DNA from: Macrostomum lignano | Taxonomy: Eukaryota | Direction: 5' to 3' | Assembly (NCBI GenBank): GCA_002269645.1 | Contig: NIVC01002969.1 | Span: forward strand, 28,479 to 92,478 | DNA length: 64,000 nucleotides | Shown here: positions 2 through 45,564 of the stretch, one piece after another | Layout of the letters: each line of letters starts with the position of its first letter | Position numbering within the stretch: position 1 is the first letter of the stretch | Translations under genes and position numbers: made by a program | The notes under the pieces: model-generated | What the model saw: only the letters and a program-made list of their open reading frames with translations | What the model was told of the DNA's origin: nothing | Database searches by the model: none

Positions 2-2134
2 GTGAGCGATCGCGAGGTGTACAGGTCCCTGCTGTGCGGCGACCCGCACGACCAGCTGGCCATCGCCTACCATCTGATTGTGGACAGCAAGTTCTCCGGC
101 AGCAGGCACGAGCAGGTCAAGGAGTTTTATGTCGCCTCCAGCCCGCCATCTGCCGCCAAGTCTTCCCGGTTCGTGGCGCTCTGAATTTTTGCTGTTCTAT
201 TGCTTTCCCATTGCAAAGCTTTGCTGCTTTTCATCTGCGGAGCTGGCCAATTCAGGCTGCGTTACGTACAGCCTGCTATGAAGTGCATTTCATGTGCACA
301 GCTGGCCAATACAGCCTGCTTTGAAGTGCATTTCATGTGCACAGCTGGCCAATACAGCCTGCTGTGAAGTGCATTTCATGTGCACAGCTGGCCAATTCAG
401 CCTGCTGTGAAGTGCATTTCATGTGCACAGCTGGCCAATTCAGCCTGCTATGAAGTGCATTTCATGTGCACAGCTGGCCAATTCAGCCTGCTATGAAGTG
501 CATTTCATGTGCACAGCTGGCCAATTCAGCCTGCTATGAAGTGCATTTCATGTGCACAGCTGGCCAATTCAGCCTGCTATGAAGTGCATTTCATGTGCAC
601 AGCTGGCCAATTCAGCCTGCTATGAAGTGCATTTCATGTGCACAGCTGGCCAATTCAGCCTGCTGTGAAGTGCATTTCATGTGCACAGCTGGCCAATTCA
701 GCCTGCTATGAAGTGCATTTCATGTGCACAGCTGGCCAATTCAGCCTGCTGTGAAGTGCATTTCATGTGCACAGCTGGCCAATACAGCCTGCTGTGAAGT
801 GCATTTCATGTGCACAGCTGGCCAATTCAGCCTGGTTTACTGAATTTTCCAGGCACCATCCGGAACGCATGAAGGAGGGTGTCGCTTTCACCCGAAATCT
901 CGAGGTCTCAACTAGCGGCAAAAGTGCCCGGGCCAAGTGGCACCTTGGACTGAGAAGCCAGAGCAGTCCTCACGACATCATGTTTGAGGTGGGTTTCTGC
1001 TGTTGATGTCGGCGCTTATGCTTATTACATACGAGCGTACTTGTACTTCAGTGTTTTGGACATTCTCTGATTCACAGTAATTCTGCACATTCCTGCATAT
1101 GCTGAACTTAGGCCCTGAGCTTAGGTGCTTTCATTCAGCTGGTCTGTCCCACACCACAGACTATGGTGTCTTACGAGTATTTAGACCTGGCATATCGTAG
1201 TTTATGTCAGTTAACGTTTTGCTTCATGGACAAAATTACTTGGCCAATCCCCGCATTTTGAAACCACCAGAAAAGTCTCGCATTTTCTGCGTTTGGGTCC
1301 CATATGTTGGCGAAGGCCGCCGCCAGCCATGACAAAGCGTCTCCCACGTTCACGCGTTCCCGAGCGGTTTTAGGCCCAGGCTACTCATGCAACAGAGCCC
1401 GCAAAGTAAATGCAGTACACCTGAAATCGAGTCCCGGTACTGGGGAACGGGAATCCCATTTGCCACAGCACCAACCACCTTTAGTTAAGTCACACACGTT
1501 TGGCTGCACCTTCACTTTGCACAGGTGTTCAAGTCGCTGGCAAAGAACAACTTCGAGTGGAAAGTTGTCAACGACTTTCATCTGCGCGTGCGCAGGCTGA
1601 ATCCAGTAACCAAGGAGACATGCCGCATGACTCTGCAGCTGTTCCTCATCGACCGGGATCGCAGCTTCCTGCTCGACTTCCGCCTCGTGGCTCCCGAGCT
1701 CACCTCCAATCGGGGCTGCAGCAACTCCAGCTTCGAAACGGACACTTCTGGCGAAGCGATCGACTGGCTGGCCAATCCTGAACTTGTGAGTAACTTGGCC
1801 AATCCTGAACTTGTGAGTAACTTGGCCAATCCTGAACTTGTGAGTAACTTGGCCAATCCTGAGCTTGTGAGTAACTTGGCCAATCCTGAACTTGTGAGTA
1901 ACTTGGCCAATCCTGAACTTGTGAGTAACTCGGCCAATTCTGAACTTGTGAGTAACTTGGCCAATTCTGAACTTGTGAGTAACTTGGCCAATCCTGAACT
2001 TGTGAGTAACTTGGCTAACTTAAACTTAAGTGACTCAGTCTCCCTATGCCCAACCGGTGTTCCAGCCCGCCTGCAGTTACACGATCCAGTTCTTCGAGAT
2101 GGCAGCCGCAGTGATCACGTCCCTGACCCGCTAA
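2..2134 (+). CDS. PRKAA: AMP-activated protein kinase catalytic alpha subunit, 3' part (5' truncated by window edge); exons 2-168, 853-988, 1525-1785, 2066-2134
   Basis: Spliced translation gives DPHDQLAIAYHLIVD...HHPERM...AKWHLGLRSQSSPHDIMFEV|VFKSLAKNNFEWKVVNDFHLRVRR...LQLFLIDRDRSFLLDFR...SYTIQFFEMAAAVITSLTR*, the AMPK-alpha autoinhibitory region and C-terminal domain. GT-AG sites and phases are consistent. Confidence 0.95.
268..834. repeat. 43-bp minisatellite (~13 copies) in AMPK intron
   Basis: Unit agctggccaattcagcctgctatgaagtgcatttcatgtgcac; the array ends just before the acceptor at 851-852. Confidence 0.95.
1771..2013 (+). repeat. 27-bp minisatellite x9 spanning an AMPK exon/intron junction
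   Basis: Unit gccaatcctgaactt|GTGAGTaacttg = last 15 exonic nt plus the donor; reads ANPELVSNL in frame without stops. Confidence 0.95.
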
Positions 2135-2988
2135 GTCGTCAGAGACGTCAGAGGATGCAAGCAGCGACGATATCAGGGGAATCAGGAGTTCAGCTGCTAA
2201 ATGAATTGTCTGCATGATTTCTAGTTCAGTTTCTGCTCTTGTTTTGCGATTTTGATCCCTCATTGCTGGTGCAATGCCCGCAGAAGTTAAACCTTGCTGG
2301 TCTGCGCTAATCCCAGGGCTGACGTTCAGTGTGCCATTTTTATTCATCAGTCAGTCATTCTGCTTCTTGCCCTGCGCACCTTCGGCGAGCACTTGGTTAT
2401 CGAGCCGTGCCGGAGACACTTGAGATTCTGTAAGCCAAGTTGGCTCTGCTATTCATTGCTTTACCATTACGCTTAGCGATTATGCTAATCAGTTATTATG
2501 AGACACTGTGATTTCCGCTAATTCCCTTTTTGATTCCCCTATTTTGCTACTGTTAATCACTGACGTTATCTTGTTGCCCTGCGCAGTTGTTTTACTTGGC
2601 TTCGAACTGTTATTTTAGTGTACATATCCTACAGGTAGATTGTAGCTTCGTTGGTGATCGCAGTTTACGACTAGTCTGCGTCTCAACTATTTTTAGCTTT
2701 GTTCTTTGTACGCCCACCAGAAAGGTTTTATATCTGCACTTTTATATCTTATATCTTCACAGAACAGTTCGTTGTGCACAAATATTCTATTCCAGCTAAG
2801 TATTTCCCTTTGATTATTTTATCATTGCAAAGGTTTAAAAAAATAGACAGAATAGCGGAGTGCCATTCCGGCAACTCCTTCAGTTCAATAGCTGATTTGA
2901 GTCCTCTTCAGTCTTGCTTTATTTTCACTTAGTTTCATTTGGGCTTCGCAGGCGGTTCAGCTTAACTGCGGTGCAGAGGCAGGCATAC

Positions 2989-5056
2989 TCAGTCGAACTC
3001 GGCGCCCAGCGCGATGCTCACTTCGCCAGACTCAACTTCTGTCTCGTGAATCCACTTTGACGTCTTTAAAGCAACTGAAAACATTGGTGGGAAAATTTAG
3101 CCATGAACCTGGAAAACTGTAGCAGCCAACTAAATGTTGTAGCGACTCACTCATGTCCCCGGGTCTCAGCAAGACTTGATACACATGCTGGCAGGTATAG
3201 TAGCAATTCAGAGGCGGCCTCAGGCGCCACCGCTTGCTGCCCTGAATCTGCGCCTGCCACGTGTTGTAGTACACTGCGTCGATCTGCGTGGGGTTCAGGT
3301 TTTTTACGTTAGTTTTTGTACTTGGTTCGGTTTCTGGACTAGTTGGTTCAGGTTCGGTTTCTGGACTAGTTGGTTCAGGTTCGGTTTCTGGACTAGTTGG
3401 TTCAGGTTCGGTTCCGGGACTAGTTGGTTCAGGTTCGGTTCCGGGACTAGTTGGTTCAGGTTCGGTTTCTGGACTAGTTGGTTCAGGTTCGGTTTCTGAA
3501 CTAGTTGGTTCAGGTTCGGTTCCGGGACTAGTTGGTTCAGGTTCGGTTCCGGGACTAGTTGGTTCAGGTTCGGTTTCTGGACTAGTTGGTTCAGGTTCGG
3601 TTTCTGAACTAGTTGGTTCAGGTTCGGTTCCGGGACTAGTTGGTTCAGGTTCGGTTCCGGGACTAGTTGGTTCAGGTTCGGTTTCTGGACTAGTTGGTTC
3701 AGGTTCGGTTTCTGGACTAGTTGGTTCAGGTTCGGTTACGGGACTAGTTGGTTCAGGTTCGGTTTCTGAACTAGTTGGTTCAGGTTCGGTTCCGGGACTA
3801 GTTGGTTCAGGTTCGGTTCCGGGACTAGTTGGTTCAGGTTCGGTTTCTGGACTAGTTGGTTCAGGTTCGGTTTCTGGACTAGTTGGTTCAGGTTCGGTTT
3901 CGGGACTAGTTGGTTCAGGTTCGGTTTCGGGACTAGTTGGTTCGGGTTTATTTCAGGACTAGTTGGTTCAGCTTCGGTTTCGTGCTGGCTGGTTCTGGCT
4001 TGGTTTGATTTCTGTTTAAAATGCGATATCTGTTCTTTCGAATGCATTAATAAATTTTGTCAGCTGCACAGAAATAAAAAGCCAAATATTTGAAACTTTC
4101 CAAAGTAAATATCGATCGTAATTCCTATCACGGTTGTGTACCTAAGATCAATTTTAGGCTAAGAAAGGCGTTGAAAATATAATCGCCCTAAAGACTCCAG
4201 AATAGCAGGTCTTTGTGCTCACATGGGCTGGCGCGCCCTTGCCGGGTCCGCCGACGAAAATCCACTCAGTGGCGCCGTGTTCGCTGTCGCTGGCCAGAAA
4301 TCCCGGCCTTTTGTAGAGCCGCCTCAGCCTCCGAGCAACTCGCTGGTTGCAGACATTCCTGCAAGCGCGTGTTAGTGGCTGTTTGATGCTGACAATTCTC
4401 AAGGCCTGCAGTTAATATGCGAGCACCTTGAAGTGCAAATGCAGTCGTGTCACTCACCAACCGACGTACCAGGAGTCACGGCTCAGATTTTCCGGCTCCT
4501 TGGACCAGCGGAAAAAGTGGCCAAGCGTTGGGAACTGGTTCTTGTAGTCGAACATCTGGCAGAGCACGCTGGCCCCTCCACCGCCGCCCTCTGGGTGGCC
4601 TTCGTTGGTCCACCGGCCCCGCCGGGCCTCCCGATAGAGCCGGCGCAGCAGGTCGAGGTCGAGGCGCCTGGTCACCGCCGGCCAATCCGCTGCGCCACCG
4701 CGGATGACAACAGGCACGTTCCGCTCCAGGAACTCCGACCGGAACCGGGCTGGGCTGATGGCCTCGGCGCCTGCCTGCAGCTCTGGCAGGCTGGTGAGGT
4801 TGGCGCAGTGGCCGCAGTCGGTGTCGGGCTGCAGTAGCATCTGCACCCAACCCGACTGCGCCGCCAGCAGACAGGGTGCGCTGTACGGGTCGCTGCCGGG
4901 GTTCGCCCGCCTCGCCCAGGCGGCCATGGCGGAGTCAAAAAGTTCGGCCGCCCATCCTGGCGACTCCGGCTCAGGAGGCCAGGCGTGGCGGCCGAACAAC
5001 AGCAGCAGCAGCAGAGCCAGTAGACCCCCGCCTACCTTTTTGGCAGTACCTGGCAT
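2989..5056 (-). CDS. Cupin-like/JmjC-domain protein with N-terminal hydrophobic segment, ~317 aa; exons 5056-4458, 4358-4223, 3283-3151, 3074-2989
   Basis: ATG at 5056, hydrophobic LLALLLLLLF, FRSEFLERNVPVVIRGGAADWPA, then WIFVGGPGKGAPAH|IDAVYYNTWQAQIQGSKRWRLRP...LLRPGDM|IALKTSKWIHET...GAEFD*. HxD...H motif present; all intron phases match. Confidence 0.85.
3320..3975. repeat. 27-bp minisatellite (~24 copies) in JmjC gene intron 2
   Basis: Unit ggactagttggttcaggttcggtttct with ttccg variants. Confidence 0.95.
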
Positions 5057-5747: not shown

Positions 5748-6175
5748 AAAATCTCTGACGAGTCACAACAGTTCTCGAAATTTTCGCATGCCCATGCCCA
5801 TGTGATCATATTAGCTACCGTTACCTTACGTGAAATCTCTGACGAGTCACAACAGTTCTCGAAATTTTCGCATGCCCATGCCCATATGATCATATTAGCT
5901 ACCGTTACCTTACGTGAAATCTCTGACGAGTCACAACAGTTCTCGAAATTTTCGCATGCCCATGCCCATATGATCATATTAGCTACCGTTACCTTACGTG
6001 AAATCTCTGACGAGTCACAACAGTTCTCGAAATTTTCGCATGCCCATGCCCATATGATCATATTAGCTACCGTTACCTTACGTGAAATCTCTGACGAGTC
6101 ACAACAGTTCTCGAAATTTTCGCATGCCCATGCCCATATGATCATATTAGCTACCGTTACCGTACATGAAATCTC
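5748..6175. repeat. 84-bp tandem repeat (~5 copies) between divergently transcribed genes
   Basis: Unit gaaatctctgacgagtcacaacag...gctaccgttaccttacgt, near-identical copies. Confidence 0.95.
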
Positions 6176-6733
6176 TTCACGCGTCGGCCAAGCAACTGCA
6201 TGCAGTGCTCTGTGATGAAGTTAAAAGAATTTAGTTTTTGCAGGCGAGTGCAAAACGAAGTTTTGAGTGCAGCATGGAGGAGCTCTGAGCACTTTCACGC
6301 CCAATTTCAGACAAAATCCTTAGCAAGATTTTATCTGCCTTGTAACTCGTAAATAATTAATTTTCTCAAACCGCCTCGCCCGACATGAGCACTGCTAGTT
6401 GCCAAAGCAGTTGCTCAAAAACAAAGGAGCTGCACTTCCTTCGTAGCAATGGGTTGCCATGGTGTTGCTGAGCTTCGTGCGAGCCGCCAGACCGTTGCCA
6501 ACGCAAAGCGCAGCGAGCAATGCCGTACCCGTTTTTGACTCCATTATTCATGAAGCTGGGACAGCTCAATTTGTCGTTTGAATCATTGATGAGGCGCCCA
6601 GTGTCACCTCAGAACCATTTAATACGGCGGAACGACCCCGCATCTCTCGCGCTCAAAGTTTCTTAAAGTCTTCGCCAGCAGGCTCTGATTTGTGAGATTC
6701 ATTTCACAAGCACCAGCTTCAAGGACCTCAGTG

Positions 6734-9700
6734 ATGCTGCGGATTTTGCTGCTGCTGCTGCCGCTGCTTCTGCTGCAGCAGCTGCTTGGAGTCAGCGGCC
6801 AGGCGCAGGAAGGTGAGGCAATCGGCAAGATTTCCCCCGAGTAAAATCGCTAAAGCTTGCTTAATAATATGAGAACTTAGAGTTTCTCATCATAGGACAG
6901 TATCTCTCACGAGCTCACAGCTTTAAATTAAAATCTGAAACTCTCGAACTAAGTGCCAGAGTCTTGAACTAGCTCTAACTCTCGAACTAAGTGCCAGAGT
7001 CTTGAACTAGCTCTAACTCTCGAACTAAGTGCCAGAGTCTTGAACTAGCTCTAACTCTCGAACTAAGTGCCAGAGTCTTGAACTAGCTCTAACTCTCGAA
7101 CTAAGTGCCAGAGTCTTGAACTAGCTCTAACTCTCGAACTAAGTGTCAGAGTCTTGAACTAGCTCTAACTCTCGAACTAAGTGCCAGAGTCTTGAACTAG
7201 CTCTAACTCTCGAACTAAGTGTCAGAGTCTTGAACTAGCTCTAACTCTCGAACTAAGTGCCAGAGTCTTGAACTAGCTCTAACTCTCGAACTAAGTGCCA
7301 GAGTCTTGAATGGAGGCAACCAGAATCGCAAAGTCTGCGACATCAAAGGTGAAGGTCCTGCTACTTGTCTTCTTTGATGCAAGGGACATGTGTCAAGCAG
7401 TATCTGATGAACAGCAATGTTACTTTGCTGGAGCAGTTTCCATCCAGGGATTTTTTCCTGAATCTCAGAGAGGGGGCGCAAAGGAACTCTTTTTCCCAAC
7501 ATAGATCATCAGGAGAGCCACAACGAAGGAACTTTGGAGTGTTCAGACCACATGCACACAGAACTTCTTAAGGAACGACCTGGGAGAGGTTTATAGAAAT
7601 TATATGCACTAATTTTTAAACTTTTCAGAGTCCTACACCTTGGTGATCAAGACTGGCAAAACGGGGACCACCAACAAGGTTTTCTTCAGCCTTAAGGGCC
7701 AGATGGGCGATTCCCCACAGCAGAGCATCAACTTTGATGGCTCCGACAAGCCTATCACGAGCATGTTCACACCGGGAAAGTGAGTGCCTTCACTGGGCTA
7801 GGGGAGCATTCCCAAGAGCACAGCATGTTCACACCGGGAAAGTGAGTGCCTTCACTGGGCTAAGGGAGCATTCCCAAGAGCACACAGGATGTTCACACCG
7901 GGAAAGTGAGCCCAGTTCACTGGGCTAGGGGAGCATTCCCAAGAGCACACAGGATGTTCACACCGGGAAAGTGAGAGCCTTCACTGGGTTAGGGGAGCAT
8001 TTCCCAAGAGAACATCTGCAACAGTCGCTGCCATTCTCTCTCGCAAGGGTGGATGTCATCGAAGGCAAATTTCGCGGAGCCCTGGGCTACATCAGCACAG
8101 TGAAGGTCAGCCAGGACTCTTACAATGGCTGGGAAATCGAAAGTGTAAGTTGTCTTGCACTCGCTTGTCTGCTTTAAGTAGTTATTTAGGAGTCGCAGTG
8201 CTATGCTCATACCCTTTGGCCCCTTTGGCCACTGAAAGTGCCAGACTGGCGCGACCGAGTTCAGTTTTTGTTGTCTCTCTCAGTTAACAGCCACCTCATC
8301 AGTGGTATCGCTGATGTGCAAAGAACAACCGAAATCGGAAGGCCTTAGAATCCTGTTACACCGCGTTTTATGTTTCTGTTAGCGATGCATCATTATGTTT
8401 GCTGCAATTCCACGTGCCCTCTCAGATTGTGGTCTTCAGTGACACCACCAGGGTGTCCAACAACGAGACCTACATTGTTCGGCAGCCCCAGGACATCAGC
8501 TTCAACGGTGAGCAGCGAATTGTCCTTGCTCCATGCTATGACATTCCCATGACCCATGTGAGCACTGACACTGTGCTGTCCTGCTCCATGCTATGACATT
8601 CCCACGACCCATGTGAGCACTGACACTGTGCTGTCCTGCTCCATGCTATGACATTCCCATGACCCATGTGAGCACCGACACTGTGCTGTCCTTGCTCCAT
8701 GCTATGACATTCCCATGACCCATGTGAGCACTGACACTGTGCTGTCCTGCTCCATGCTATGACATTCCCATGACCCATGTGAGCACCGACACTGTGCTGT
8801 CCTTGCTCCATGCTATGACATTCCCATGACCCATGTGAGCACTGACACTGTGCTGTCCTGCTCCATGCTATGACATTTCCATGACCCATGTGAGCACTGA
8901 CACTTTGCTGTCCTGCTCCATGCTATGACATTCCCATGACCCATGTGAGCACTGGAACTGAGCTGCCCTTGCACCCTGCTATGACATACCATGACCCAAT
9001 GACTTACAGTGAACTGCGGCTGGAGCGCCTGGAGCAGCTGGATGACCTGCCAAGGCACCTGCGCCACAGGTGGGGTCCAGATGCGAATCCGCAACCCGAA
9101 CAGCCCGCCCAGGATCAACTCTGGCAAAGCGTGCGAGGGCTCCGAGTTCGAGCAGCAGCCCTGCAAACTGGCAATGGACTGTCCGGGTAACACTGGGGTT
9201 CGGGTGCTGGGTCCAGTGGCTGGGAATGCAACTGGGTAGCTGGGAATGCAACTGGGTAGCTGGGCATGCAACCGGGTAGCTGGGCATGCAACTGGGTAGC
9301 TGGGAATGCAACTGGGTAGCTGGGCATGCAACTGGGTAGCTGGGCATGCAACTGGGTAGCTGGGCATGCAACTGGGTAGCTGGGAATTCAACTGGGTAGC
9401 TGGGAATTCAACTGGGTAGCTGGGCATGCAACTTTTAGGAATTATTTAACTACAATTTTTTAGGTTAATTAGACCCTTAATTTTCAAAATTAATAGTACT
9501 TCTAAGTAAAAATTGGCTTTTATAGTTTAAAAAAATATTAATTTTGTAAGTTAAAGATAATTCTTTTAGAGACCGGGTAGCTGGGCATGCAACTGGGTAG
9601 CTGGACATGCAACTGGGTAGCTGGGCATGCAACTGGGTAGCTGGACATGCAACTGGGTAGCTGGACATGCAACTGGGTAGCTGGACATGCAACTGGGTAG

Positions 9701-12700
9701 CTGGGCATGCAACTGGGTAGCTGGACATGCAACTGGGTAGCTGGACATGCAACTGGGTAGCTGGACATGCAACTGGTTAGCTGGACATGCAACTGGGTAG
9801 CTGGACATGCAACTGGGTAGCTGGACATGCAACTGGGTAGCTGGGCATGCAACTGGGTAGCTGGGCATGCAACTGGGTAGCTGGACATGCAACTGGGTAG
9901 CTGGACATGCAACTGGTTAGCTGGACGTGCAACTGGGTAGCTGGACATGCAACTGCATAGCTGGACATGCAACTGGGTAGCTGGACATGCAACTGGTTAG
10001 CTGGACGTGCAACTGGGTAGCTGGACATGCAACTGCATAGCTAGACATGCAACTGGGTAGCTGGACATGCAACTGCATAGCTGGACATGCAACTTGGTAG
10101 CTGGGCATGCAACTGGGTAGCTGGACATGCAAATGCATAGCTGGACATGCAACTGGGTAGCTGGGCATGCAACTGTATAGCTGGACATGCAACTGGATAG
10201 CTGGGCATGCAACTGGGTAGCTGGACATGCAACTGTATAGCTGGGCATGCAACTGTATAGCTGGACATGCAACTGTATAGCTGGGCATGCAACTGTATAG
10301 CTGGACATGCAACTGGATAGCTGGGCATGCAACTGGGTAGCTGGACATGCAACTGGGTAGCTGGGCATGCAACTGGGTAGCTTGGTAAGTGGTATTTAGT
10401 TTGCTTATCCGAGGTATGAAGCGGTATCAAGTAGCCATATCGGGTATTATTGGGTCGAGTAGACTCAAGCTCAAACAGTAAACACCTGGCCAGGCCGAAA
10501 CTTATTGAGGTAAAAATTGAGTCAGAATTTCACTACCAGCATGTACAGAGTCTATCGGCCACTCACTCCACCTGTCAATTTTTACACCCCAAATTCCACA
10601 GTGAATGGCAACTGGAGCGACTGGTCCCCCTGGAGCACCTGCAGCGTCAGCTGCGCCCAAGGCAGCCGCAGCCGCAGCCGCACCTGTACGAACCCGGCGC
10701 CCGCAAACGGCGGACTGGACTGTGTCGGCGCCGCCAGCGACACCGGAGTCTGCACCGAGTCGCCCTGCCCCAGTGCGTCCTCAGATCTTACTCTGACTAC
10801 TCTGAGTCGCTAGCAAATAACTCTGTATCTTGTATTGGAAACTGCTTATTATATCTGTCTGGCAGCTCAGACTCTTGTTACCTCATCTGGGATTTCATCT
10901 CTGGCAAACACGGAAACCCTGATTTGATCAATCCGTTACTTCGCCGGCTGGCCCTGTGGGAAATATAGCTTACTATGTTAGACCAGATGTCGGGTGCCAA
11001 AAAGCGGCCAATATTGCAGAAAGATCGCCCCCAAGAGCTCCCCAAGCCAGCAGATCCGCACCCGCCCCGCAGTCGATGGCCAGTGGGGCAGCTGGTCCCC
11101 GTTCTCCGCCTGCAACGCCAGCTGCGGCCCCGGAGTCCAGACCCGAGCTCGCCTGTGCAACTCGCCAGAGCCGAAGTTCAACGGCAGGAACTGCCAGGGC
11201 GACGGAATCGAGCTCAAGACCTGCGAGCTGACTCCATGTCCCAGTGAGTTGGGCTGGCTTCCATAGCAACCATCACCTACATAAACCTGTTGAGTCACGC
11301 TCCCGTAGCATTCACCGCAAAGTCACAGCCTCACAGCCCCATCCGTGCCCCAACCCGCTGAGTCCGTGGCGCACTCGAAGTGCTGGGGTGGGCGTTGCGT
11401 GCAGCAGCCGGAGTCGGGACGAGGCTTCAGCGCGGCCGTTTCCTCGGCAACTTGTCGCCAGGAATTGTCCGAGGTAAGGTGCCGAATTTATCTCAGTAAA
11501 TCTCTGTGTGCATGAATAAGCCTGCTTGAGCTGTGATTGGATAAAAGCTTTCAAATTTATTCAGCGCAAACTCATTTATACGATTTTTTTTAGCGTTAAA
11601 AAGATATATAGAATCGCTTCAACACTAAAGCTCGTATTTCACAAATCCTTTCTTCCATGAGCTGCTGGCCCTCAATATGGACTGCAGCTTCAGTAGCTCT
11701 GGCACAAATCCTCACGCAATTCTGTCCATGAGCTGCTGGCCCTCAATGTGGACTGCAGCTTCAGTAGCTCTGGCACAAATCCTCAAGCAATTCTGTCCAT
11801 GATCTGCTGGCCCTCAATGTGGACTGCAGCTTCAGTAGCTCTGGCACAAATCCTCACGCAATTCTGTCCATGAGCTGCTGGCCCTCAATGTGGACTGCAG
11901 CTTCAGTAGCTCTGGCACAAATCCTCAAGCAATTCTGTCCATGATCTGCTGGCCCTCAATGTGGACTGTAGCTTCAGTAGCTCTGGCACAAATCCTCAAG
12001 CAATTCTGTCCATGATCTGCTGGCCCTCAATGTGGACTGCAGCTTCAGTAGCTCTGGCACAAATCCTCACGCAATTCTGTCCATGATCTGCTGGCCCTCA
12101 ATGTGGACTGCAGCTTCAGTAGCTCTGGCACAAATCCTCAAGCAATTCTGTCCATGATCTGCTGGCCCTCAATGTGGACTGCAGCTTCAGTAGCTCTGGC
12201 ACAAATCCTCAAGCAATTCTGTCCATGATCTGCTGGCCCTCAATGTGGACTGCAGCTTCAGTAGCTCTGGCACAAATCCTCACGCAATTCTGTCCATGAG
12301 CTGCTGGCCCTCAATGTGGACTGCAGCTTCAGTAGCTCTGGCACAAATCCTCAAGCAATTCTGTCCATGATCTGCTGGCCCTCAATGTGGACTGCAGCTT
12401 CAGTAGCTCTGGCACAAATCCTCAAGCAATTCTGTCCATGATCTGCTGGCCCTCAATGTGGACTGCAGCTTCAGTAGCTCTGGCACAAATCCTCACGCAA
12501 TTCTGTCCATGATCTGCTGGCCCTCAATGTGGACTGCAGCTTCAGTAGCTCTGGCACAAATCCTCAAGCAATTCTGTCCATGATCTGCTGGCCCTCAATG
12601 TGGACTGCAGCTTCAGTAGCTCTGGCACAAATCCTCACGCTTCACTTTAACAGTCATGAACAGAGCCGGAACGGCTGCACCAGGCTATGGCAGTCCCAAC

Positions 12701-15700
12701 AAGAACTGCAACCCGACAGCCCGACATTCCAGACCAGCTTTACTTTATTGCTAATGGCTGGCGACTGAGATGCCCACTCCAGAGCCGTCTGCATCTCCAG
12801 ATTTCCTCGCAATCGAACTCACAGGTTCACAAAGTTACACAGTTCTGTGGCATTCTGTTGGTGCGTGGGTGCGTCTGAGAGCAACTCTGCGATTTTAATT
12901 TGCATAAATTAAGCCTGGCTGCCACCTCAGATTCAAGAGACAAAATGCCATCTTGATACCAGATTGCTCTTCGCCATAAGTCAGCGGATCCTCAGCTGAT
13001 GGCCCATCAGTCAGCGGATCCTCAGCTGATGGTCCATCAGTCAGCGGATCCCAGACAATAGCCAATGAGTTGTTTCCCATATCGCCCAAAGCAAATTCGA
13101 TGAACATCCCGCAGTCGACGGCGGCTGGTCCAGCTGGGGCGAGTTCTCCAGCTGCTCGAGCTCGTGCGGCGACGGCATCGAGATTCGAAACCGGCCCTGC
13201 ACGAACCCGCCTCCCCAGTTCGGCGGGCGGCCTTGTCCGGGGAGCGCCAACGACTCGAGGTCATGCAATCTCAGGCCATGCCCGAGTGAGTGGCTAGGGG
13301 CTTCCCAGCAGTTTAATGGTGGTCGAATATCGGGATTTAATAAAAACTGCACGAGAGACCCGCAGAGACTCGAGATGTCCAATCCCGAACCCCTAAACCT
13401 TCCAGTTGACGGCCAATGGAGCGAGTGGTCCACCTTCTCTGGGTGCAGTCGCAGCTGTGGCTCCGGCAAGCAGTGGCGCGGCCGCCAGTGCGCCAGCCCG
13501 GTCCCGCAGTTTGGCGGTCTCGACTGCCCCGGCGGAGCCAACGAGACCCGCGAGTGCAACACCAACCCTTGTCCAGGTGGGTGCTTCGCGTGGAACCAGT
13601 TTCCTGATCGAAGACTTAAATCCAGAGAAAGTAGAGAGAATCATTCGAGTAAAAGGGTTGACCACGTGTCCATTGGCAAGATAATATGACTTTTAGACTC
13701 TCTCAGCAGCCAGCCTCCCTGCATCCGACGCCATTTTCTTGAACTTCCCTGCAGTGGACGGCGGCTGGTCTGCCTGGTCCGCCTTTGCTGACTGCAGCGT
13801 CACCTGCGGCAACGGCAGCCACAGCCGCCAGCGCAGCTGCAGCAGCCCGGAGCCGCAGTTCGGAGGCCTCAACTGTTCTGGCAAGGCGGTCGAATTCGGC
13901 AACTGTAACCCCCGACCTTGCCCGAGTGAGTGACAGCCGCTGCTCTCCCTGCCAGCCCCACCTGCCCGAGTGAGTGACAGCCGCTGCTCTCCCTGCCAGC
14001 CCCACCTGCCCGAGTGAGTGACAGCCGCTGCTCTCCCTGCCAGCCCCACCTGCCCGAGTGAGTGACAGCCGCTGCTCTCCCTGCCAGCCCCACCTGCCCG
14101 AGTGAGTGACAGCCGCTGCTCTCCCTGCCAGCCCCACCTGCCCGAGTGAGTGACAGCCGCTGCTCTCCCTGCCAGCCCCACCTGCCCGAGTGAGTGACAG
14201 CCGCTGCTCTCCCTGCCCAGCCCCACCTGCCCGAGTGAGTGACAGCCGCTGCTCTCCCTGCCAGCGACAGCGTGAGTGACAGCGGCAGGGGGAGCAGCGG
14301 CTATCACTCACTCGGGCAGGTGGGGCTGGGCAGGGAGAGCAGCGGCTGTCACTCACTCGGGCAGGGTGGGGATGGGTCTGGCTGCTCACTTCTTCATCGT
14401 ACAGCTCACCTCCTCACATATTTGACCTTTTAATTAGCTTTCGAATCGACCAGAATTTATTACGAGCATTGAGTGCATGGTCCGGATGCGCAGTAATTAA
14501 TGAGCCGTGGCAGCACTGGACAACCTATGCACTCGCAATGGCAATTAAATCTCAGTGCTTCAAGCCAAGCCATGCCATGGAACTCTCCCGCAGTTGACGG
14601 AGCCTGGACCAGCTGGTCTGACTACTCGGCCTGCTCGCTCACCTGCGGCAGGGGTCGCCAGTGGAGCCAGCGGAGCTGCAGCGCTCCGGAGCCGCAGTTC
14701 GGCGGGAAAAACTGCCCAGGAAACTCCACCCGCGACCGAGCCTGCCTGGTCACTGAGTGCCCCGTGGACGGCCTCTGGGGATCCTGGGGCGCCTGGGAGA
14801 GCTGCAGCGTCACCTGCGGCAGCGGCACCGCCTGGAGGAGGCGGCACTGCGACTCCCCGGAGCCTCAGTTTGGCGGCAGCCGCTGCAGTGGTGCAGGCAA
14901 CGAGAGCACGCCCTGCCATCCGGAGGACTGCCCCAGTGCGTGCTGCCGCATGGTCTTGCTTCCCATTTCCCCTGTACTCAGCGCATTTGTGCTTGGGCCA
15001 TTTTCGCCTATTCCCCGCCCCCTGGTTTGTCAATTCAGCTTCACCTTGTAGACGCCGTCACCCGTTCACAGTCATCCCGCCGTTTCTTCCATATTATTTT
15101 TTTCAATTCTCCGTCATCGCCCAAATTTCAGTAAACGGCGGCTGGTCGCCCTGGTCGGAATTCACCGCCTGCTCCAGGTCTTGCGGGGGCGGCCAGCGCA
15201 GCCGCACTCGGCGGTGCGACTCCCCGCCGCCCCACGCCGGCGGCGCTGACTGCGTTGGCAGCGGAAGTGACGTCCAGGACTGCGGCACGGACCCTTGCCC
15301 AGGTCTGGCTTGTCTCCTACAAGACTATGCGATATGAGTTATGACCCCGCTGCCAACTATAGCAAGATTTTCCATCTATATTAAGCTGTTGCGTTTGTGT
15401 ACGGTTGGGTTGCCAGACAGAAGAATGCCTGCAGGGCCATAGACTTCAGCAGGGGTGTAGCCAGTGAGACAAGGGTGCCGCTGATAAAACTCATGTCACC
15501 CCTTCGCAACTGATTTGGAGCCCATTCACGTCAGTTGTGGTGTCCCCTACCTGCTGATTTGGCCCCCTCACAGAAGGTGAGCCCTTGGTGCCCCTTGATG
15601 CTGGCGCCCCCTTGGTGCTAGAGCCCGTTGTTGATGGTGCTTTAGTGTCTCTGGGAGTATTTTGACCGGGTTGAAATTGCTGTCGCCAAACCGATTGAGG

Positions 15701-18700: not shown

Positions 18701-21700
18701 TGGCGTCCATTACGCCGAGGGCGTGGAGCGACCTGCTGGGAGGCTGGGTGGACACGGACGCAGAGGTGGCGGAGGAGTCCAGCATCGAAAAGATGGTGTT
18801 CAAGAGCAACTTCTTCGGCTCGTACTCGGGCAAGATGTTCATCGCGCCCAACACCATCAATTTTGCCACCGTTTTCAACAACTTCGCGGGCAAGCTGGCT
18901 GAGAACTTTGTCACGCTGTTGGTGCTGTGTCTCATCATAGGCATCTACGTGGTCGTCTCCGTCTGGATGTGGCGACTGGACCGACAGGAGGCTGCCAATG
19001 TAAGTGCCAGCAGGCTGGGACTACGGCAAATTTGGATTACTTGCCACTGGGTCTCCGCATGTATAGGCCTTATTAGGCAGTGTCGGTGTTACGTTGAACA
19101 TATGTGGTACAGTCACACAGTATAAATTCCCTTAAGCTGTGCACAAAGGCTGCCTGAGCAATAATAAAGATCTAAGGATGATTTGGATTGCCAGAGTGAG
19201 CTAAGGGGACAGTGGCTAAGTGTTCTATTAACATATTTATTTGAGAGTTAACGCAAGCGCTAGTTTCTCTGAGATGGAAGAGTTTTGTTTTTACTGCAAA
19301 ATTTATACTTTTTATTTCGAGGCTATGAGCTAAGTAGCCGATCTTTGTACACACTGCATGCTTCAACAAATGGAATGATTGGCACAGCATGCGGTCTCAA
19401 CCCAATCCACTCACTCAGCTGCGGTATGAGCCCCTGGAGGACAACGAGTTCGACAATGACTACACCTTCATCATCAGCGTGTACACCGGGGACGAGTCCG
19501 GCGCCGACACCACCTCGAATGTGTTCATCAACCTTGCGGGCACCTGGGGCTCTTCTGGCCCCAGCCAGCTGTCTGACGGAGTGCGCCAGAACTTCTCCCG
19601 CGGCTCCGTCTGCAACTTCGCAATGACCACCAGGGCTCCTCTCGGCGAGTTGCGCGGCCTGAAGGTCTGGCACGACAACAGCGGCAAAAAGCCGGGCTGG
19701 TTCCTGGAGAAGATACTCATCGAGGACCTGCAGACCAAGAAGAAGTGAGTTTCTTCTTGTCTTTCTTCCTGTCTAGCTCGTGTTCAGCATGTCCGCCCTT
19801 TTGCCGCTTGGCTGGTTTGTTGCTTTTACATGTAACACTGTGTGGTGGCTTTCAAACTGGATCATCGTTTCAGATGTATCTGTATATGCTCATATTAGTC
19901 ATGAGTCTCTCCTCGGAACACTGCGATTCCGGTGGAGGTTCATAGTTTTCGAGGAATGCACAGGAACCCACTAAATGCCCACGAATTTCACTATTTCAGG
20001 AAACTTCACATCTTTAAAATGCTGGCCTATTTTCATAACCCTTAATTCTGGGCATATCAGGGTGTAAAGAAAGCAAAATTAGGGATAGAATTAGGGATAG
20101 AAGATGGAAAAATTTATTTGAATAGTACAAAGCCTAGCGATTTTTACGCCTTCCACTAAATTCATTGCTAAGTCTACGACAATGCGACAATTTAGCCAAT
20201 TTAGCACAAGACGTTCAATCTTGTGCTGAACACAGTCTGAATCTGCAAATTCCTTGCCCAAACTCACCTGCAGCTATGTCTTCATGTGCGATCAGTGGCT
20301 GGCTGAAAACAAGTTTGACAGCCGTACCATGCGGGTGCTGCCCGAGGTGAAGCAGGACCAGCGCTTCCAGGAGATGATGCTGCGGTACAAGGCGGGCGGG
20401 GTGGTCAACAAGCACGTGATCACGGCGCTTTTCCGCAAGACCGGCCAGTCTAACTACTCCCGGCTGCAGCGCACAGGTGTGGCCAACGCCATGTTCTTCC
20501 TCACAATGGTGTGCAATGCCATGTGGTACGGCAAGGGAGACGACCTGGATGCCGAGGCTAACTTCAGCATCGACCTCGGCCCGATTTCGGTCACCTGGTT
20601 CCAGCTGTACTCTGGCATTCTCTCCATGGCCATCACCTACCCCTGCATCTTCGCGGCGGCTGAAATCTTCCGCCGAACAAAGAAATGGCAGCGTCGCTGG
20701 AGCGAGGACGATGTGGAGAGCAAGAAGAAGGAAATTCGGCTGCCCAAGGGCTTCCTGGTCATCGGCTGGGGCCTCCTGCTCCTGGGCGTAGGGCTGAGTT
20801 TCTTCTTCACCTTCCTTTACAGCATCGAATGGGGCAAGGAAAAGGCCAACGGCTGGCTCAAGAGCTTCTTCCTGGGAATCCTGCAGTTGGTGGTGGTCAC
20901 AGATCCCATCTGCCTGCTTATCGTGTTCGTCGTGGCCAAGAAGATCTTCGGCCAGAAAGAGTCGGAGGAAAACGTCTTCGAGCTGGATGATCTCATTAAT
21001 GATGATCTCAAGCAGGTGAGGAGCCGAAACGATATGTTAATTGGTGGTAGTTATAGATAATTTAGTTCCGTATCTCTATTCTTGTAGCTATCTTTGAAAA
21101 GCTACAGCAATAAATGCTATTTGATGTATCTTCCTTCATGCGGCATTTGTCTGTCCTCGCTCCGATCACAACAGTTGCTGCCATCTAAATGGTGCTTCCA
21201 CAACTCATGCCACACCTTACACACTTTCAGGTCCTGGATGGCACTGAATACGCTCCCCCGGACCCGACTCGGATGGAGGAAATCCGAGCTGAGCGCCGAA
21301 ACAACCAGAAGATGTCGCAGACATTCACGGACGTGATGTCCTATGTGGTGTACATGTTCCTCCTCGTCGCTCTGGCTTACGACTCACGTGACCAGGTCAG
21401 CTTCCGCCAGAACCAAAACTTAAAAGACCAATTCCTCACGGCCGCGCCAACCCGGTTCAATGACTTTAAGCACGTTTTCGACTGGCTGAATGGCAGCATC
21501 GTGCCCAGACTGTACCGAACCACCGAATACAACGGCGAACCACTCACTGGAGACCTCAAAGATGCGATCGACACGTGTGACTGCATCAAGCAGGGACCAT
21601 TCAGGCTGAGGCAGCTGAGGGTCAATCCACGTGAGTCTAGGCTTTCCTAGTTGAAAATATTTGGGACTTATAGGATCCACTGCTTCTGGGGTTGCCACTG

Positions 21701-24700
21701 GATGGATTTAGCAGGTGGCTGCAGCAACCAGCCCTATCTCCCACAGGCAAGTGCCCGGTAACGTGGCCGTTCAAGGCGTACCCCAGAAATCGTGGATCTG
21801 CTCATCGGACTTCTCTCCCCAAGCGGCGGACCAGGCGGTTTACCGTCCGCTGTGGCTGCCCGACAGCAACGGCTGGGTGCGGAATGCGTCATTGCAAATG
21901 CGGGCAAAGTCGCAGATCAAGCGAATGCGGCCGGATGAAATCGTTCTACAAGCCTTTTGGTACCGTAGCGCTGACTCCATGATGAGCTTCCCGTTCGAGG
22001 GCGCCTTCACAACCTACCCGGGTGATGGCTATGCAGCCACGCTCGGGCTCAACAGTGCTGAGGCCATGTGAGTCCCAAACTCAAACGCTCACGCTGCTGA
22101 ACGCTGTAGTTTTGTGAAAAGTGGCGGTGTGAAAAACTTGCAAAAAAGAAGCATATTCTCCCTGGTTTGAAGCGAAATGCATACAAACGCCTTAAAACTT
22201 TTTTCGTTTTTTTCCTATCGTGGACCCACAGGTGGATCATCAACCGGCTGCGGGCCACCAACTGGTTGGACGAGAAGACTCGAGCCATGTTCCTGGAGGG
22301 CACGGTGTACAACGCCAACACCAACCTGTTCACCACCATACAGATCCTGTTGGAGTTCCCGGCCGCAGGCGGAATTCTCACCTACAAGAACGGAGTCCGC
22401 ACCTACCGCCTGTACAACTACACCGGCGGCAAAGGCATCATCCTCATGGCCATGCAGGGCCTGTTCGCCCTCATCTGCCTGTACCAGATCTATCGGGAGA
22501 CGCGCAGCCTTCTCACGCTACGACTCAAGTACTTCGATGACCTGTGGAACAAGATCGAGTTCGTTAACATCCTGCTGTGCATCACAATCATGATCACGTA
22601 CGGCATCCGCATCAAAATCACCATCGACTCCATCGAGCTGATGATGAACAATAGGGGTGAGGGGCGGTGCTCGATTTAGTGAATTTGTTGTGAATTCTAT
22701 TCCTGGCTGCGTGGCGTTTAAACTTTTTGTTTTGCTAGGCGGAAAAACACGCTGTTGTCACAATAACTCAACAGAAGTTCTAAAACAGCACAATTCCATC
22801 CCTTCAGCATGCTGTTGTTTCCCTGCGTCCCTTCAGTCCTCAGTTTAAGTTGTTGCCGTGTTTCATACACTAGTGCTTGGGAAAAAATGCTGGAGAACAA
22901 CAGACAGCTGTATTAATTCCCTTTCCCACAGGAATGTACGTGGCTTTCGACAACGTTATTGAGTGGGTAGAGGCAACATGCGTGGCCATGGCTCTAAGTG
23001 TGTTCCTCACGATCTTCCGGGTGCTGAAGTTCTTGGGCTTCAACAAGCACATCGCCATCCTGCTCGCCACCGTGAAGCAGTGCGCCCGCCAGTTGTCCTC
23101 GTTCGGCGTCGCCTTCGTGCTGATCATGGCGGCCTTCCTGTCGGCTGGCACGATCCTGTTCTCGTTCACCGAGGCCAGCTTTGCCTCCGTGCTGTCCAGC
23201 TGCCGTTCGCTCTTCACTACCGCACTCGGCATTCAGGGTTACACGCAGATCTTCGTCAACAGCCAGGGCACGACTGCCAGCCTCATCTTTTTTGGCGGCT
23301 GGTCTTGCCTGGCGGTCTTTTTTCTGGTGTCAGTCTTCGTGTCCATCCTCACCGACACCTACAGCGTCGTGGTCAGCGACGGCCTCTATAGCTACGATGA
23401 GGAGTTTGTCAACCACATGTGGAGCAAGTGAGCAAAGTGGTCAAGTGCACCTACTCCCGAATGTGTTAAGTGTAGTTGGTAGGAACTGGTCTTCGAAGAG
23501 TTTTGGAGCACATGGAATGTTGTACGCTGGTGGTGTTCATGGATTAGTCCGGTCCATGTGTTAGTGTGCTATGCACTGGTCTGGCGTATTTGCGTGCCAA
23601 TCTGTTGGGGCTTTAACTACATACTTACAGCATGTGTCGCTAGGCTAACCAGCCTTGATCATTCATTTACCTCATATTGGAATCCAAAATGCACTATGCT
23701 GCAAAATCATGCTTTCGAAACTACAGATTTATGGGTACTATGGCCAGCATTACGTCAAAGAAGGACGCGCTGGGCGAGGCGCTGCAGAAGAGTGTCAGCG
23801 CTGTCAAGCGTCGAATGGGTGAGCCTAAGTTCAAGGATCAGATGCATAACAATCCGTTGCTTTCACTGCTGCTAATTTCTTTTCGCAGTGACGGAGGAAG
23901 ACATCGAGATTCAGCTTAATGAGGACCGGCGCCAGGAGTCCGTTGGCGGGGCCGAGGAGAGCTCTGGCGGCAAAAAGGCAAAAGACAGTAAGCCTTGCTC
24001 AGTTCTTGGAGCCGGAGACTACTCGTATTTATGGATGTACTAATTAGACATAGCTCGTAAAAGTATCTCCAGCACAGCATGTTAAAAGTTCGCGTTTGCG
24101 GGTTCGCTCAAATTAGCAAGTATCCACAGAATGACACGTGCAAACATATAAAAAGTGCTCTCGAACATAAAGAGCATGTAACCCTACATCTCCCCTTCTC
24201 CCCTGGCCCGCAGTCAACCCCGGGCTCAAGATGAAGCTAGCGGTGGTAAACAGGGACAAGCCGGAGACCGGAGAAAGCTACGTCTGGACGCCCAAAGAGA
24301 CGGGAGACGAGGTGCTCGTTGACGCCGGCGAGCTGAGCGCCGTTGCCACAGAGGACGCGGAGCCGGACTGGATCCCCAGGTTCAAGTCAACCGCACTGGA
24401 CTTGCAGCCGCCAGGACTTGACGACAGCGGGGCGTCGGCTTTCCGCTTTGACCCGCTGGGCGACAGCGCCAGGTCTGGCCTGCACCTTCTGCCGTCGAAG
24501 CCTTCCGCATTGCCACCACTGCAGGTGAGTTGCTTTGGTGTGCAAAAAGATAGCGATCAGAGTCAATTACAGCTTCGAGCGCGTCCATGAGTGAATCCTT
24601 AGCTCAGTGGCAAGGACTCAGAACCGGCCGTCCTGGCATTTCGCGTTTAAATCTTACTATTAGACAAACTTACGCTCGTAAAAGCTCACAATAAGGTTTT

Positions 24701-26265: not shown

Positions 26266-38199
<11,934 letters not shown>

Positions 38200-40493: not shown

Positions 40494-43400
40494 CTAGACC
40501 CGATCCGTGTCGCCATGGTAGCTGCGTCTGTCGTTGCTATGGGAACGCGAGCCGGCCGAGCGGGCCCTCCTGTGAGCGGCGGCTGCCGAGCTGTTGGACC
40601 TGCGGCTGGCACCAGAGCCGCGCCTGGGTTGAGGCGGGGCTGTAGGCGAGGGACAAAGTGTTTTTGCAACTGCAGGCGAGACTGGATGGTGCAGGTGAGA
40701 CTGGTGCAGGTGAGACTGGTGCAGGTGAGACTGGTGCAGGTGAGACTGGTGCAGGTGAGACTGGTGCAGGTGAGACTGGTGCAGGTGAGACTGGTGCAGG
40801 TGAGACTGGTGCAGGTGAGACTGGTGCAGGTGAGACTGGTGCAGGTGAGACTGGTGCAGGTGAGACTGGTGCAGGTGAGACTGGTGCAGGTGAGACTGGT
40901 GCAGGTGAGACTGGTGCAGGTGAGACTGGTGCAGGTGAGACTGGTGCAGGTGAGACTGGTGCAGGTGAGACTGGTGCAGGTGAGACTGGTGCAGGTGAGA
41001 CTGGTGCAGGTGAGACTGGTGCAGGTGAGACTGGTGCAGGTGAGACTGGTGCAGGTGAGACTGGTGCAGGTGAGACTGGTGCAGGTGAGACTGGTGCAGG
41101 TGAGACTGGTGCAGGTGAGACTGGTGCAGGTGAGACTGGTGCAGGTGAGACTGGTGCAGGTGAGACTGGTGCAGGTGAGACTGGTGCAGGTGAGACTGGT
41201 GCAGGTGAGACTGGTGCAGGTGAGACTGGTGCAGGTGAGACTGGTGCAGGTGAGACTGGTGCAGGTGAGACTGGTGCAGGTGAGACTGGTGCAGGTGAGA
41301 CTGGTGCAGGTGAGACTGGTGCAGGTGAGACTGGTGCAGGTGAGACTGGTGCAGGTGAGACTGGTGCAGGTGAGACTGGTGCAGGTGAGACTGGTGCAGG
41401 TGAGACTGGTGCAGGTGAGACTGGTGCAGTTGAGACTGGTGCAGGTGAGACTATGATAACAGATTTGACAACAGGTTAAAGTCCAGAGCAGTGCTACTCA
41501 CTATCGCTTTGCACCCAGATATCCAGGATGTACTGCAGTACATGCGACATTCTGCCGAGCTGCAGAAAGCTAGCCTCCATGATCCGGGCTGAGTCAGGCG
41601 ATGGATAGAGCAGCAGTGGGCCCAGGCAGGTGGCCAGCTGGTCAAGGGTCATCTTGTTGGCATCTGATCGAAGCGCCACCCGCTTTAGGTGGTCCAGAAT
41701 TGCCACCAGAGTCTCCTGTGAGGATGAAGGGTGCGAGAGTTCAAGTCATGATTTGGCAGGACTGGCTATTAAAAACTTGGAGCTCCCACACGGGTGGTGC
41801 GCTCATTTATTTGAATATTTGATCCATGTAGATACTGAGCATTGGGCAATGTACATTAGATAGAAATGCCTTCAGATCAGGCAATGTACGCTAAACCACG
41901 CACGGGGTGTCGGAGAACAGGAGCGGTCGCTTACTACTCGTAGTTAAATAAGTGCATCACAAAGGGGAGGCAGGGTTTGCTACCGGAGCACAAACTACTC
42001 GTTCTTCGGAGGGAAGTGCAAGGTTAATGCGTCTGCGTCTCGTGCCAAAGAGCTCATGCCTGATCCCATGAGCGGTCGCATTCATTTTGGTCACGTGACC
42101 GAAAATTGGTCTGGGCTTGTGGAATTCTCACCCATGAGGGCCAATCCCTAAGGCTTAGATTGTGTACAAGCCTGGAGATGAGGAACTTAGGGCCGCAGTT
42201 CACCCTATGTAAGTGTGCGCGTACATGTGCGTTTTGGTCAGCAAAATGAGCATGGCTGCTTGCCTCCTCGATAGCTACGGGTCGACTGTCGCTTTGATTT
42301 GTTCCAGTGCTCAACCCACCTGCAGAATAACAAACTAAATCAGTACTAAACTAAATCTTTCTCAATTCCCTGCGATCAAAGCCAAAATGGAACAGGAACT
42401 ACTCGGATCATCTGAGATTAATAAATCCAAAAACTTACATAAAAAGGTGTATAATATTGTCTTTGTCTGCGAACAGCCTTGTGACTTTAAGCTGCATTAA
42501 TTCTCTGTGGTATTACTTTGTGTCCTGGCTTATTCTAAATAGCGCGCCCAAAACTCAATGGCAGCCGCATTCCGGGTGTCAGAGCGGCAGGCACATGGGT
42601 AGCGGCTCTGACTCAGGCTTCAATGGCAGCCGCATCCCGGGTGTCAGAGCGGCAGGCACATGGGTAGCGGCTCTGACTCAGGCTTCAATGGCAGCCGCAT
42701 CCCGGGTGTCAGAGCGGCAGGCACATGGGTAGCGGCTCTGACTCAGGCTTCAATGGCAGCCGCATCCCGGGTGTCAGAGCGGCAGGCACATGGGTAGCGG
42801 CTCTGACTCAGGCTTCGCTCATCAATATGTGGAGCTTAGGAATTCGCTCATGAGTGCAAGAATAAAAATGCAAATTACTGCGGCCAGCAGCTTGGGTAAC
42901 TCAATAATGCAAATGGAAAGACACACAAATGCAAATTGCAAGCTGATTCAGCCGTCTGTCTTGGAGTAAATTAGCAGCTTGTGCCCCGGTTGATATCGAA
43001 TTATCCAGGGCCCCCACGAAGGCCTTGCGAATCGAGGTGAGAATTTCGCGATTCGCTCTGGCTGTCAGGCCTAAGAGAAGCACACAGTGCCACTTGGGTA
43101 AATTAAGTTAGCAGACATACAGGCCATTAAACATCGCTTCCACGGATCCAAGGGAAAATTATTTTCAAAAATAAAAATCTGGGTTGATCTTTAACTCCGT
43201 AAACTGGATGGGAGCAGTACAGAAACGATCGTATTACACAATGTATTTTATGAGATACGGTCTGCTGTGAGCTGACTCGACTGCTTCACCTGCCCCAGCT
43301 AGTTCAGCTGCACCACCTGCCCCAGCTAGTTCAGCTGCATCACCTGCCCCAGCTAGTTCAGCTGCTTCAGCTGCCTCATCTGCCCTGCCCACAAAATCCT

Positions 43401-45524: not shown

Positions 45525-45564
<40 letters not shown>

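Follow-up and report, generated by a model that had tools for sequence, protein, structure and literature searches.

A nuclear copy of mitochondrial trnQ-trnW-trnT DNA within a single unit of an intronic minisatellite in Macrostomum lignano

Copies of mitochondrial DNA in the nucleus (NUMTs) are reportedly inserted when double-strand breaks are repaired by non-homologous end joining, a conclusion that is said to go back to Blanchard and Schmidt in 1996 and to Ricchetti et al. in 1999. A review likewise describes NUMTs as entering at double-strand breaks by this route, with junctions that are blunt or share 1-7 bp of microhomology (Hazkani-Covo et al. 2010, PMC2820518), and more than half of the primate NUMTs came without any deletion at the target (PMC2820518). 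For the flatworm Macrostomum lignano a mitogenome of 14,193 bp has been published (Egger, Bachmann & Fromm 2017, PMC5446695), the genes of which all lie on one strand and are transcribed (PMC5446695). Its published gene table gives the order cob-trnH-trnQ(ttg)-trnW(tca)-trnT(tgt)-trnP-rrnL on that strand, with trnQ at 2721-2775, trnW at 2776-2837 and trnT at 2838-2896 (PMC5446695, Additional file 3). In the searchable literature we found no report of NUMTs in Macrostomum, only two incidental co-mentions. Here we analyse a stretch of 64,000 nucleotides of M. lignano nuclear DNA (assembly GCA_002269645.1, contig NIVC01002969.1, positions 28,479 to 92,478 of the forward strand; hereafter the window, with coordinates counted from its first letter), in which an AT-rich insert at 9434-9573 interrupts a 20-bp minisatellite lying in an intron of a polycystin-1-like nuclear gene. 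The insert is most probably a genuine NUMT of an ordinary kind, and we describe its mitochondrial source, its junctions and the explanations that can be offered for its presence.

As reference for BLASTN we used the mitochondrial contig LFJF01008916.1 (Additional file 1, PMC5446695), which measures 14,191 nt after removal of its terminal overlap. Positions 9431-9560 of the window aligned with positions 478-608 of this contig at 122 of 131 columns (93.1%) with one gap and an E value of 1e-49, and substrings of the insert occur verbatim in the contig (PMC5446695, Additional file 1). No other significant match to the mitogenome was returned from the rest of the 64-kb window. The insert is collinear with trnQ-trnW-trnT and stands on the plus strand, as in the published gene order, so that the adjacent trnW-trnT pair which a preliminary description of this DNA had expected from such a comparison was indeed recovered. 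That description had, however, taken the insert for two abutting mitochondrial transfer RNAs (tRNAs), tRNA-Trp and tRNA-Thr, and here the picture had to be adjusted at both ends. The first 20 nt (9434-9453, plus strand) belong to neither gene; on the evidence of BLASTN, of ARWEN run on the reference and of the published gene table they are the 3' end of trnQ(ttg), 100% identical to the reference and covering the 3' strand of the anticodon stem, the reduced T/V loop and the 3' strand of the acceptor stem. The end of a protein gene, which had been a candidate for these 20 nt, was rejected on account of this match. The trnW(tca) gene is complete (62 nt, 9454-9515, plus strand; BLASTN and ARWEN, the latter with limits 9453-9517), with six differences from the reference and its stems intact. 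For trnT(tgt), BLASTN and ARWEN, together with a sub-threshold Rfam match, point to the 5' 45 nt (9516-9560, plus strand; three differences), which take in the acceptor 5' strand, D-arm and anticodon arm and reach into the T/V region, and only this part could be verified, since the 13 nt that would form its 3' end agree with the reference at 5 of 13 positions. The two genes thus resemble the functional M. lignano trnW and trnT (PMC5446695) in their anticodons, TCA and TGT, in order and strand, and in the identical stems of trnW; unlike these, they form a nuclear, intronic copy in which trnT is not verifiably complete and which shows nine differences in 131 nt.

The tRNA folds seen in the preliminary description were also borne out by dedicated programs. 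In the metazoan-mitochondrial mode of ARAGORN/ARWEN, a mitochondrial tRNA-Trp(tca) was called at 9453-9517 and a tRNA-Thr(tgt) at 9515-9575, abutting and both on the plus strand. Standard ARAGORN found no tRNA in the window and Rfam had no match there at gathering thresholds, as expected of reduced metazoan mitochondrial tRNAs; below threshold, the Rfam tRNA model matched 9516-9574 with 20.1 bits against a gathering score of 29 (E 0.065, in a small search). The ARWEN mode is permissive: elsewhere in the 64 kb it made nine calls that are evidently spurious, several lying in unrelated tandem repeats, and when the insert was shuffled with dinucleotides preserved, about 9% of the resulting sequences yielded one call. 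Yet not one of 2000 such shuffles gave two non-overlapping tRNA calls on the same strand, and the pair is therefore above chance. When applied to the corresponding reference stretch, ARWEN called trnQ, trnW, trnT and trnP in that order, and the trnW cloverleaf was the same in insert and reference, with all four stems identical and tca as anticodon. A search of JGI metagenome contigs and IMG/VR for the exact pattern of both anticodon arms gave no match, with a pattern that misses even the reference, the trnT stem of which differs by one base.

The way in which the insert departs from the reference mitogenome follows tRNA structure. Of the aligned positions 56% lie in stems, but eight of the nine differences found over the 131 columns fall in loops or at unpaired positions and the lone stem change keeps a wobble pair. 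In trnW one difference each lies in the D-loop, at position 26 and in the variable region, and three consecutive ones lie in the T-loop; in trnT they are a 1-nt deletion in the D-loop, one change at position 26 and one in the anticodon stem, where a T-A pair has become T.G. The probability that at most one of nine differences would lie in stems is 0.007, or 0.03 with the three adjacent changes counted as one event. This pattern looks like the product of selection for tRNA structure acting in a living lineage of mitochondria, and is unlike what neutral decay of a nuclear copy or sequencing error would leave. The divergence of 7% is best read as functional mitochondrial tRNA evolution since the transfer, or as the mark of a source mitotype other than the reference.

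On the nuclear side, Tandem Repeats Finder delimits a 20-bp minisatellite with the unit GCTGGGCATGCAACTGGGTA at 9219-10382, and within the window no copy of this unit occurs outside the array; the insert sequence, too, is single-copy in the window. The left arm (9219-9433) consists of ten full units followed by a 15-nt partial unit, GCTGGGCATGCAACT, and the right arm (9575-10382) begins with the GGGTA that completes the broken unit and continues with 40 units, as laid out in a unit-by-unit table. One repeat unit is thus split 15+5 nt by the insert, with the phase kept and no target base lost. This confirms the reported splitting of a unit by an AT-rich insert of about 140 bp, the 140 nt of which have a GC content of 18.6%, compared with 57% in the left arm, 54% in the right arm and 51% in the window. 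The single C at 9574 (plus strand) is ambiguous: it may end the insert, or it may be the C of an AACC-type variant unit such as AACCGGGTA, which is present at 9259. Because the two arms together restore exactly one unit, we infer that the array came first and the insert second. At the left junction the alignment starts at 9431, corresponding to position 478 of the mitochondrial contig, and comparison of the repeat (GCAACT/GGGTA, the slash marking the breakpoint) with the mtDNA (GGACT/TTTAGG) reveals a 3-nt microhomology, ACT, at 9431-9433 (plus strand). At the right junction 0-1 nt are shared. With these junctions and a target unit restored as 15+5 nt, the insert agrees with what has been described for end joining (PMC2820518). 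It lacks a target-site duplication, a poly(A) stretch and a CCA, and its 5' end lies inside a tRNA stem and not at a transcript processing site.

From the anatomy of these junctions and the known behaviour of NUMTs we infer the following course of events. A short double-stranded piece of mtDNA, which began midway in trnQ, included trnW and ended within trnT, would have reached the nucleus of an ancestor of M. lignano; a chromosomal double-strand break would have occurred inside the pre-existing 20-bp intronic minisatellite; and end joining would have inserted the piece, using the ACT microhomology at the left end and 0-1 nt at the right, where 13 nt of filler may have been added. We assign a probability of roughly 85% to this reading, that of a NUMT captured by end joining at a break in a pre-existing minisatellite. 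From its position in an intron the nuclear copy is expected to be inert.

Seen against known NUMTs, the locus is in most respects familiar: it is a collinear copy of the mitogenome with high identity in non-coding nuclear DNA, with 3 nt of microhomology on one side and a nearly blunt junction on the other, and it is free of target deletion, poly(A) and target-site duplication. Unlike typical NUMTs, the insert measures only about 130-140 bp and carries nothing but tRNA genes, its position is exactly within a single minisatellite unit, it has 13 nt at one end that do not match the mitogenome, and at its junction donor and target share an identity of 11 nt where 1-7 bp are usual. It adds a further case to a well-known class, and its unusual features are so far curiosities.

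Two of these features, the 11-nt identity on the left and the 13-nt tail on the right, deserve closer description. In the last, broken unit, positions 9421-9431 (plus strand) read TGGGCATGCAA and are identical to positions 459-469 of the mitochondrial contig, within trnQ, 9 nt upstream of the collinear homology. This is the sole exact match of at least 10 nt between the array proper and the entire 14.2-kb mitogenome, and the chance of finding a single such site within 10-30 nt of either breakpoint comes to 0.004-0.01 by a post hoc estimate. Put another way, from position 459 onward the nuclear sequence equals the mitochondrial one minus nine nucleotides, AGTTTTGGA, that cover the anticodon loop of trnQ. 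The identity may be a coincidence, or it may have helped to align the broken end of the array onto mtDNA.

On the right, the tail TTCTTTTAGAGAC (9561-9573, 13 nt, plus strand) could be junction filler, a templated insertion or a strongly diverged 3' end of trnT. The 5 of 13 positions at which it agrees with positions 609-621 of the reference would have a probability of about 5e-7 under the divergence of the other 131 nt. ARWEN pairs TAGAGACC of the tail with the 5' acceptor strand of trnT; the complete tRNA-Thr fold, considered as proof of a mitochondrial tail, was rejected on the basis of a random-tail control. When random 13-mers of the mitogenome took the place of the tail, 497 of 1500 constructs (33%) still gave tRNA-Thr(tgt); when the real tail was shuffled, 385 of 1500 (26%) did so; and when it was deleted, the call was still made. 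Since the call survives random, shuffled and deleted tails, the fold is uninformative on the origin of the tail. A further match was found in the opposite orientation: ATAATTCTTTT, at 9558-9568, is the reverse complement of positions 636-646 of the mitochondrial contig, in trnP, 28 nt past the end of homology. It overlaps the end of homology by ATAA, so that only 7 nt are new and AGAGAC (9568-9573) is left over; the inverted match could be a short strand-switch. Polymerase-theta-mediated end joining leaves junction filler that is copied from the nearby donor or flank, often in inverted orientation, and is primed from microhomology. The tail at 9561-9573 resembles such filler in departing from the donor and in matching, over part of its length, the nearby donor in inverted orientation with a 4-nt overlap. 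It differs in that only 11 nt are matched, four of them in the overlap, with six nucleotides over, and the enzyme is not inferable from sequence alone. We record the 13 nt as filler of uncertain origin.

These two features are the basis of a possible, if rather doubtful, refinement of the end-joining reading, which keeps the same mitochondrial origin and has the capture guided by homology or templated by a polymerase, either in theta-mediated end joining or by template switching. The 3' tail of the array (ending in TGGGCATGCAACT) would anneal to the 11 nt of trnQ and prime from the downstream ACT; the anticodon loop would be bulged out, mtDNA would be copied, the strand would switch near trnP at ATAA, and the array would be rejoined, steps that we hold just as tentatively. 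Uniqueness of the 11-mer among array-mitogenome matches of at least 10 nt, at 9 nt from the breakpoint and with P of about 0.004-0.01, is what one would look for under this course, as is a nuclear sequence equal to the mitochondrial one less the 9 nt over the anticodon loop, and the inverted match at 9558-9568 with its ATAA overlap would give the switch a place to land. But both statistics are post hoc, and by k-mer count about 1.4 chance 11-mer matches are expected in the mitogenome under uniform composition; the inverted match provides just 7 nt past the overlap, AGAGAC still has no source, and the intact repeat unit together with the ACT microhomology fully accounts for the left junction. 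The full version, in which capture was guided by the 11-nt minisatellite-trnQ identity and completed by template switching, yielding both the missing 9 nt and the partly inverted tail, we consider unlikely. The same identity invites the opposite order of events, with the NUMT present first and the 20-bp array growing later on both sides, perhaps seeded by the trnQ-derived TGGGCATGCAA, since 11 of the unit's 20 nt also occur in trnQ, immediately upstream of the captured piece. This we find scarcely credible: the arms are in the same phase and jointly make up one unit (15+5 nt), which would be very unlikely had each arm grown independently; no mitochondrial match was seen for the remaining 9 nt of the unit; and nearly every intron of the host gene has an unrelated minisatellite of its own. 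Derivation of the array from the NUMT was rejected on the ground of this phase continuity.

A mitochondrial transcript, and not mtDNA, might also have been the source, if an unprocessed polycistronic trnQ-trnW-trnT RNA had been reverse-transcribed and the complementary DNA (cDNA) captured at a break. The mitochondrial genes are all transcribed from one strand, elements bearing reverse transcriptase lie in the window (the BEL/Pao pol at 30047-33043), and if the tail were truly the 3' end of trnT the insert would end 1-2 nt from a tRNA processing site. The tail, however, mismatches that 3' end, the 5' end of the insert is within the anticodon stem of trnQ and not at a processing site, CCA, poly(A) and target-site duplication are all missing, and the review cited above favours bulk organelle DNA over cDNA (PMC2820518), all of which makes an RNA route very improbable. 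We see an even slighter chance that the insert is an artefact of library or assembly, in which a chimeric read or a mis-join placed present-day mtDNA in the array. Mitochondrial DNA is abundant in libraries from whole animals (440x coverage in Egger et al., PMC5446695), tandem arrays are error-prone to assemble, and a look-up of three open reading frames (ORFs) crossing or flanking the array, aimed at independent assemblies of the junction, found none of the three on record. Such a chimera is nevertheless unlikely because the identity is only 93% and the 7% divergence avoids stems, with substitutions at loops and unpaired sites and one stem change that preserves a wobble pair; in addition, one unit is split exactly in phase, and 140 bp is far below the usual contribution of a read-level chimera.

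Several points nonetheless weigh against capture of the mtDNA piece by end joining as set out above. Plain end joining gives no reason to expect the 11-nt identity between repeat and trnQ beside the junction, and the 13-nt tail is not explained by the simple capture of a contiguous fragment. The junctions and the probable order of events were read from the assembled sequence. The reference was transcribed by hand from the supplement, and the lengths of homopolymers beyond the alignment could contain small errors. Finally, the window is not identical to contig NIVC01000496.1, described below, and may derive from a different line, haplotype or paralogous copy, on which the source mitotype and the age of the insertion would depend.

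The two arms of the array also differ in their variant units, as the preliminary description had noticed in a partition of ggga and gac types. The left arm has GGGCAT in six units and GGGAAT or GGGAATTC in five; the right arm has GGACAT in 28 (including two GGACGT and one TAGACAT) and GGGCAT in 12, and TGTATA or TGCATA tails are mostly distal there. GGGAAT-type units thus make up 5 of 11 on the left and none of 40 on the right (Fisher P=2e-4), and GGAC-type units none of 11 and 28 of 40 (P=3e-5). The partition is real, but the separate evolution of the arms after insertion that had been read from it, though it fits the data, is not compelled: variant tails occur in 3 of 20 units in the first half of the right arm vs 12 of 20 in the second (P=0.008), and because variant blocks form within that arm without any interruption, divergence of the arms after the insertion is not required. 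Homogenisation may be hindered by the insert as a barrier.

NUMTs are a frequent and well-understood phenomenon, and the present case changes no picture. As a fixed landmark in a minisatellite, this one lets questions be asked about the spread of variant repeats and the blocking of homogenisation. The copy differs from the mitogenome almost only where tRNA structure allows and may be a relic of another, or earlier, mitotype of this model flatworm, and its junctions are a small natural record of break repair in a regenerating animal. It also calls for caution in the design of mitochondrial primers and probes and in tRNA annotation in Macrostomum assemblies. Were the homology-guided reading to prove general, minisatellites resembling mtDNA would be preferred landing sites of NUMTs, and flatworm NUMT junctions would record polymerase-driven, homology-primed repair.

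The host gene lies within positions 1-24600 of the window on the plus strand, with many exons matching Pfam TSP_1 followed by PLAT, Polycystin_dom and PKD_channel, and the insert lies in its sense orientation. The interrupted intron (9187-10601, plus strand) is about 1.4 kb long and is nearly all minisatellite and insert. Its putative boundaries, GT at 9187-9188 and AG at 10600-10601, were placed from the splice dinucleotides and the TSP_1 exons on either side, that is, by reading the DNA itself. The upstream exon (9010-9186, plus strand), delimited in the same way by AG and GT, encodes one thrombospondin type 1 repeat (Pfam TSP_1, E 6e-8), as does the downstream exon (10602-10772, plus strand; Pfam TSP_1, E 7.5e-14; boundaries from sequence); further downstream on the plus strand Pfam finds more TSP_1 repeats, PLAT, Polycystin_dom and PKD_channel. 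According to Tandem Repeats Finder nearly every intron of this gene contains its own unrelated minisatellite; besides the one that is interrupted, such arrays lie at 269-834, 1769-2015, 3324-3981, 5749-6176, 6939-7310, 7763-8014, 8521-8998, 11650-12637 and 13911-14265. The polycystin exon at 20254-21060 matched no M. lignano protein in the database, and a protein search with a polycystin exon returned only distant metagenomic matches. At the DNA level, positions 460-3152 of a metagenomic contig (ENA ERZ25070786, ctg88555l) carry polycystin exons with 70-77% identity to 20488-23064 of the window; this contig presumably comes from a related flatworm in that metagenome sample.

Positions 33546-57568 of the window align with contig NIVC01000496.1 of Mlig_3_7 in long blocks that are 95.5-99.1% identical. 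This comparison covered 58.5-83.5 kb of that contig, 24-48 kb from the insert site, the homologous site being expected at about 35-36 kb. NIVC01000496.1 is therefore a second, near-identical copy, whether a haplotype, a paralogue from a recent duplication or another assembly. Within the aligned part, the SYDE-like C2-RhoGAP exon at 44581-45897 is 100% identical to the M. lignano protein BOX15_Mlig014851g2, which is encoded on NIVC01000496.1. Both matches agree with a nuclear origin of the window in M. lignano or a very close relative.

Two other AT-rich patches of the window, at 28.1-29.0 kb and 36.8-38.3 kb, were considered as NUMTs and rejected, as BLASTN gave no significant mitogenome match for either. 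The former (28101-29000) is a 0.9-kb patch of 26% GC with several copies of ATGTTACGACCAT and, not being mitochondrial by BLASTN, might be a non-autonomous transposon. On the minus strand at 30047-33043 there is an intact-looking BEL/Pao-type pol ORF of 998 amino acids, the best database match of which is 43% identical, and on the plus strand at 35065-36425 a group of ORFs resembles, as judged by eye, fragments of reverse transcriptase and integrase. Two large tandem arrays flank the SYDE-like C2-RhoGAP exon: a nearly perfect one at 40687-41452, with 51 copies of a 15-bp unit, and one at 47525-51795, with about 109 copies of a 40-bp unit and a strong G and A skew.

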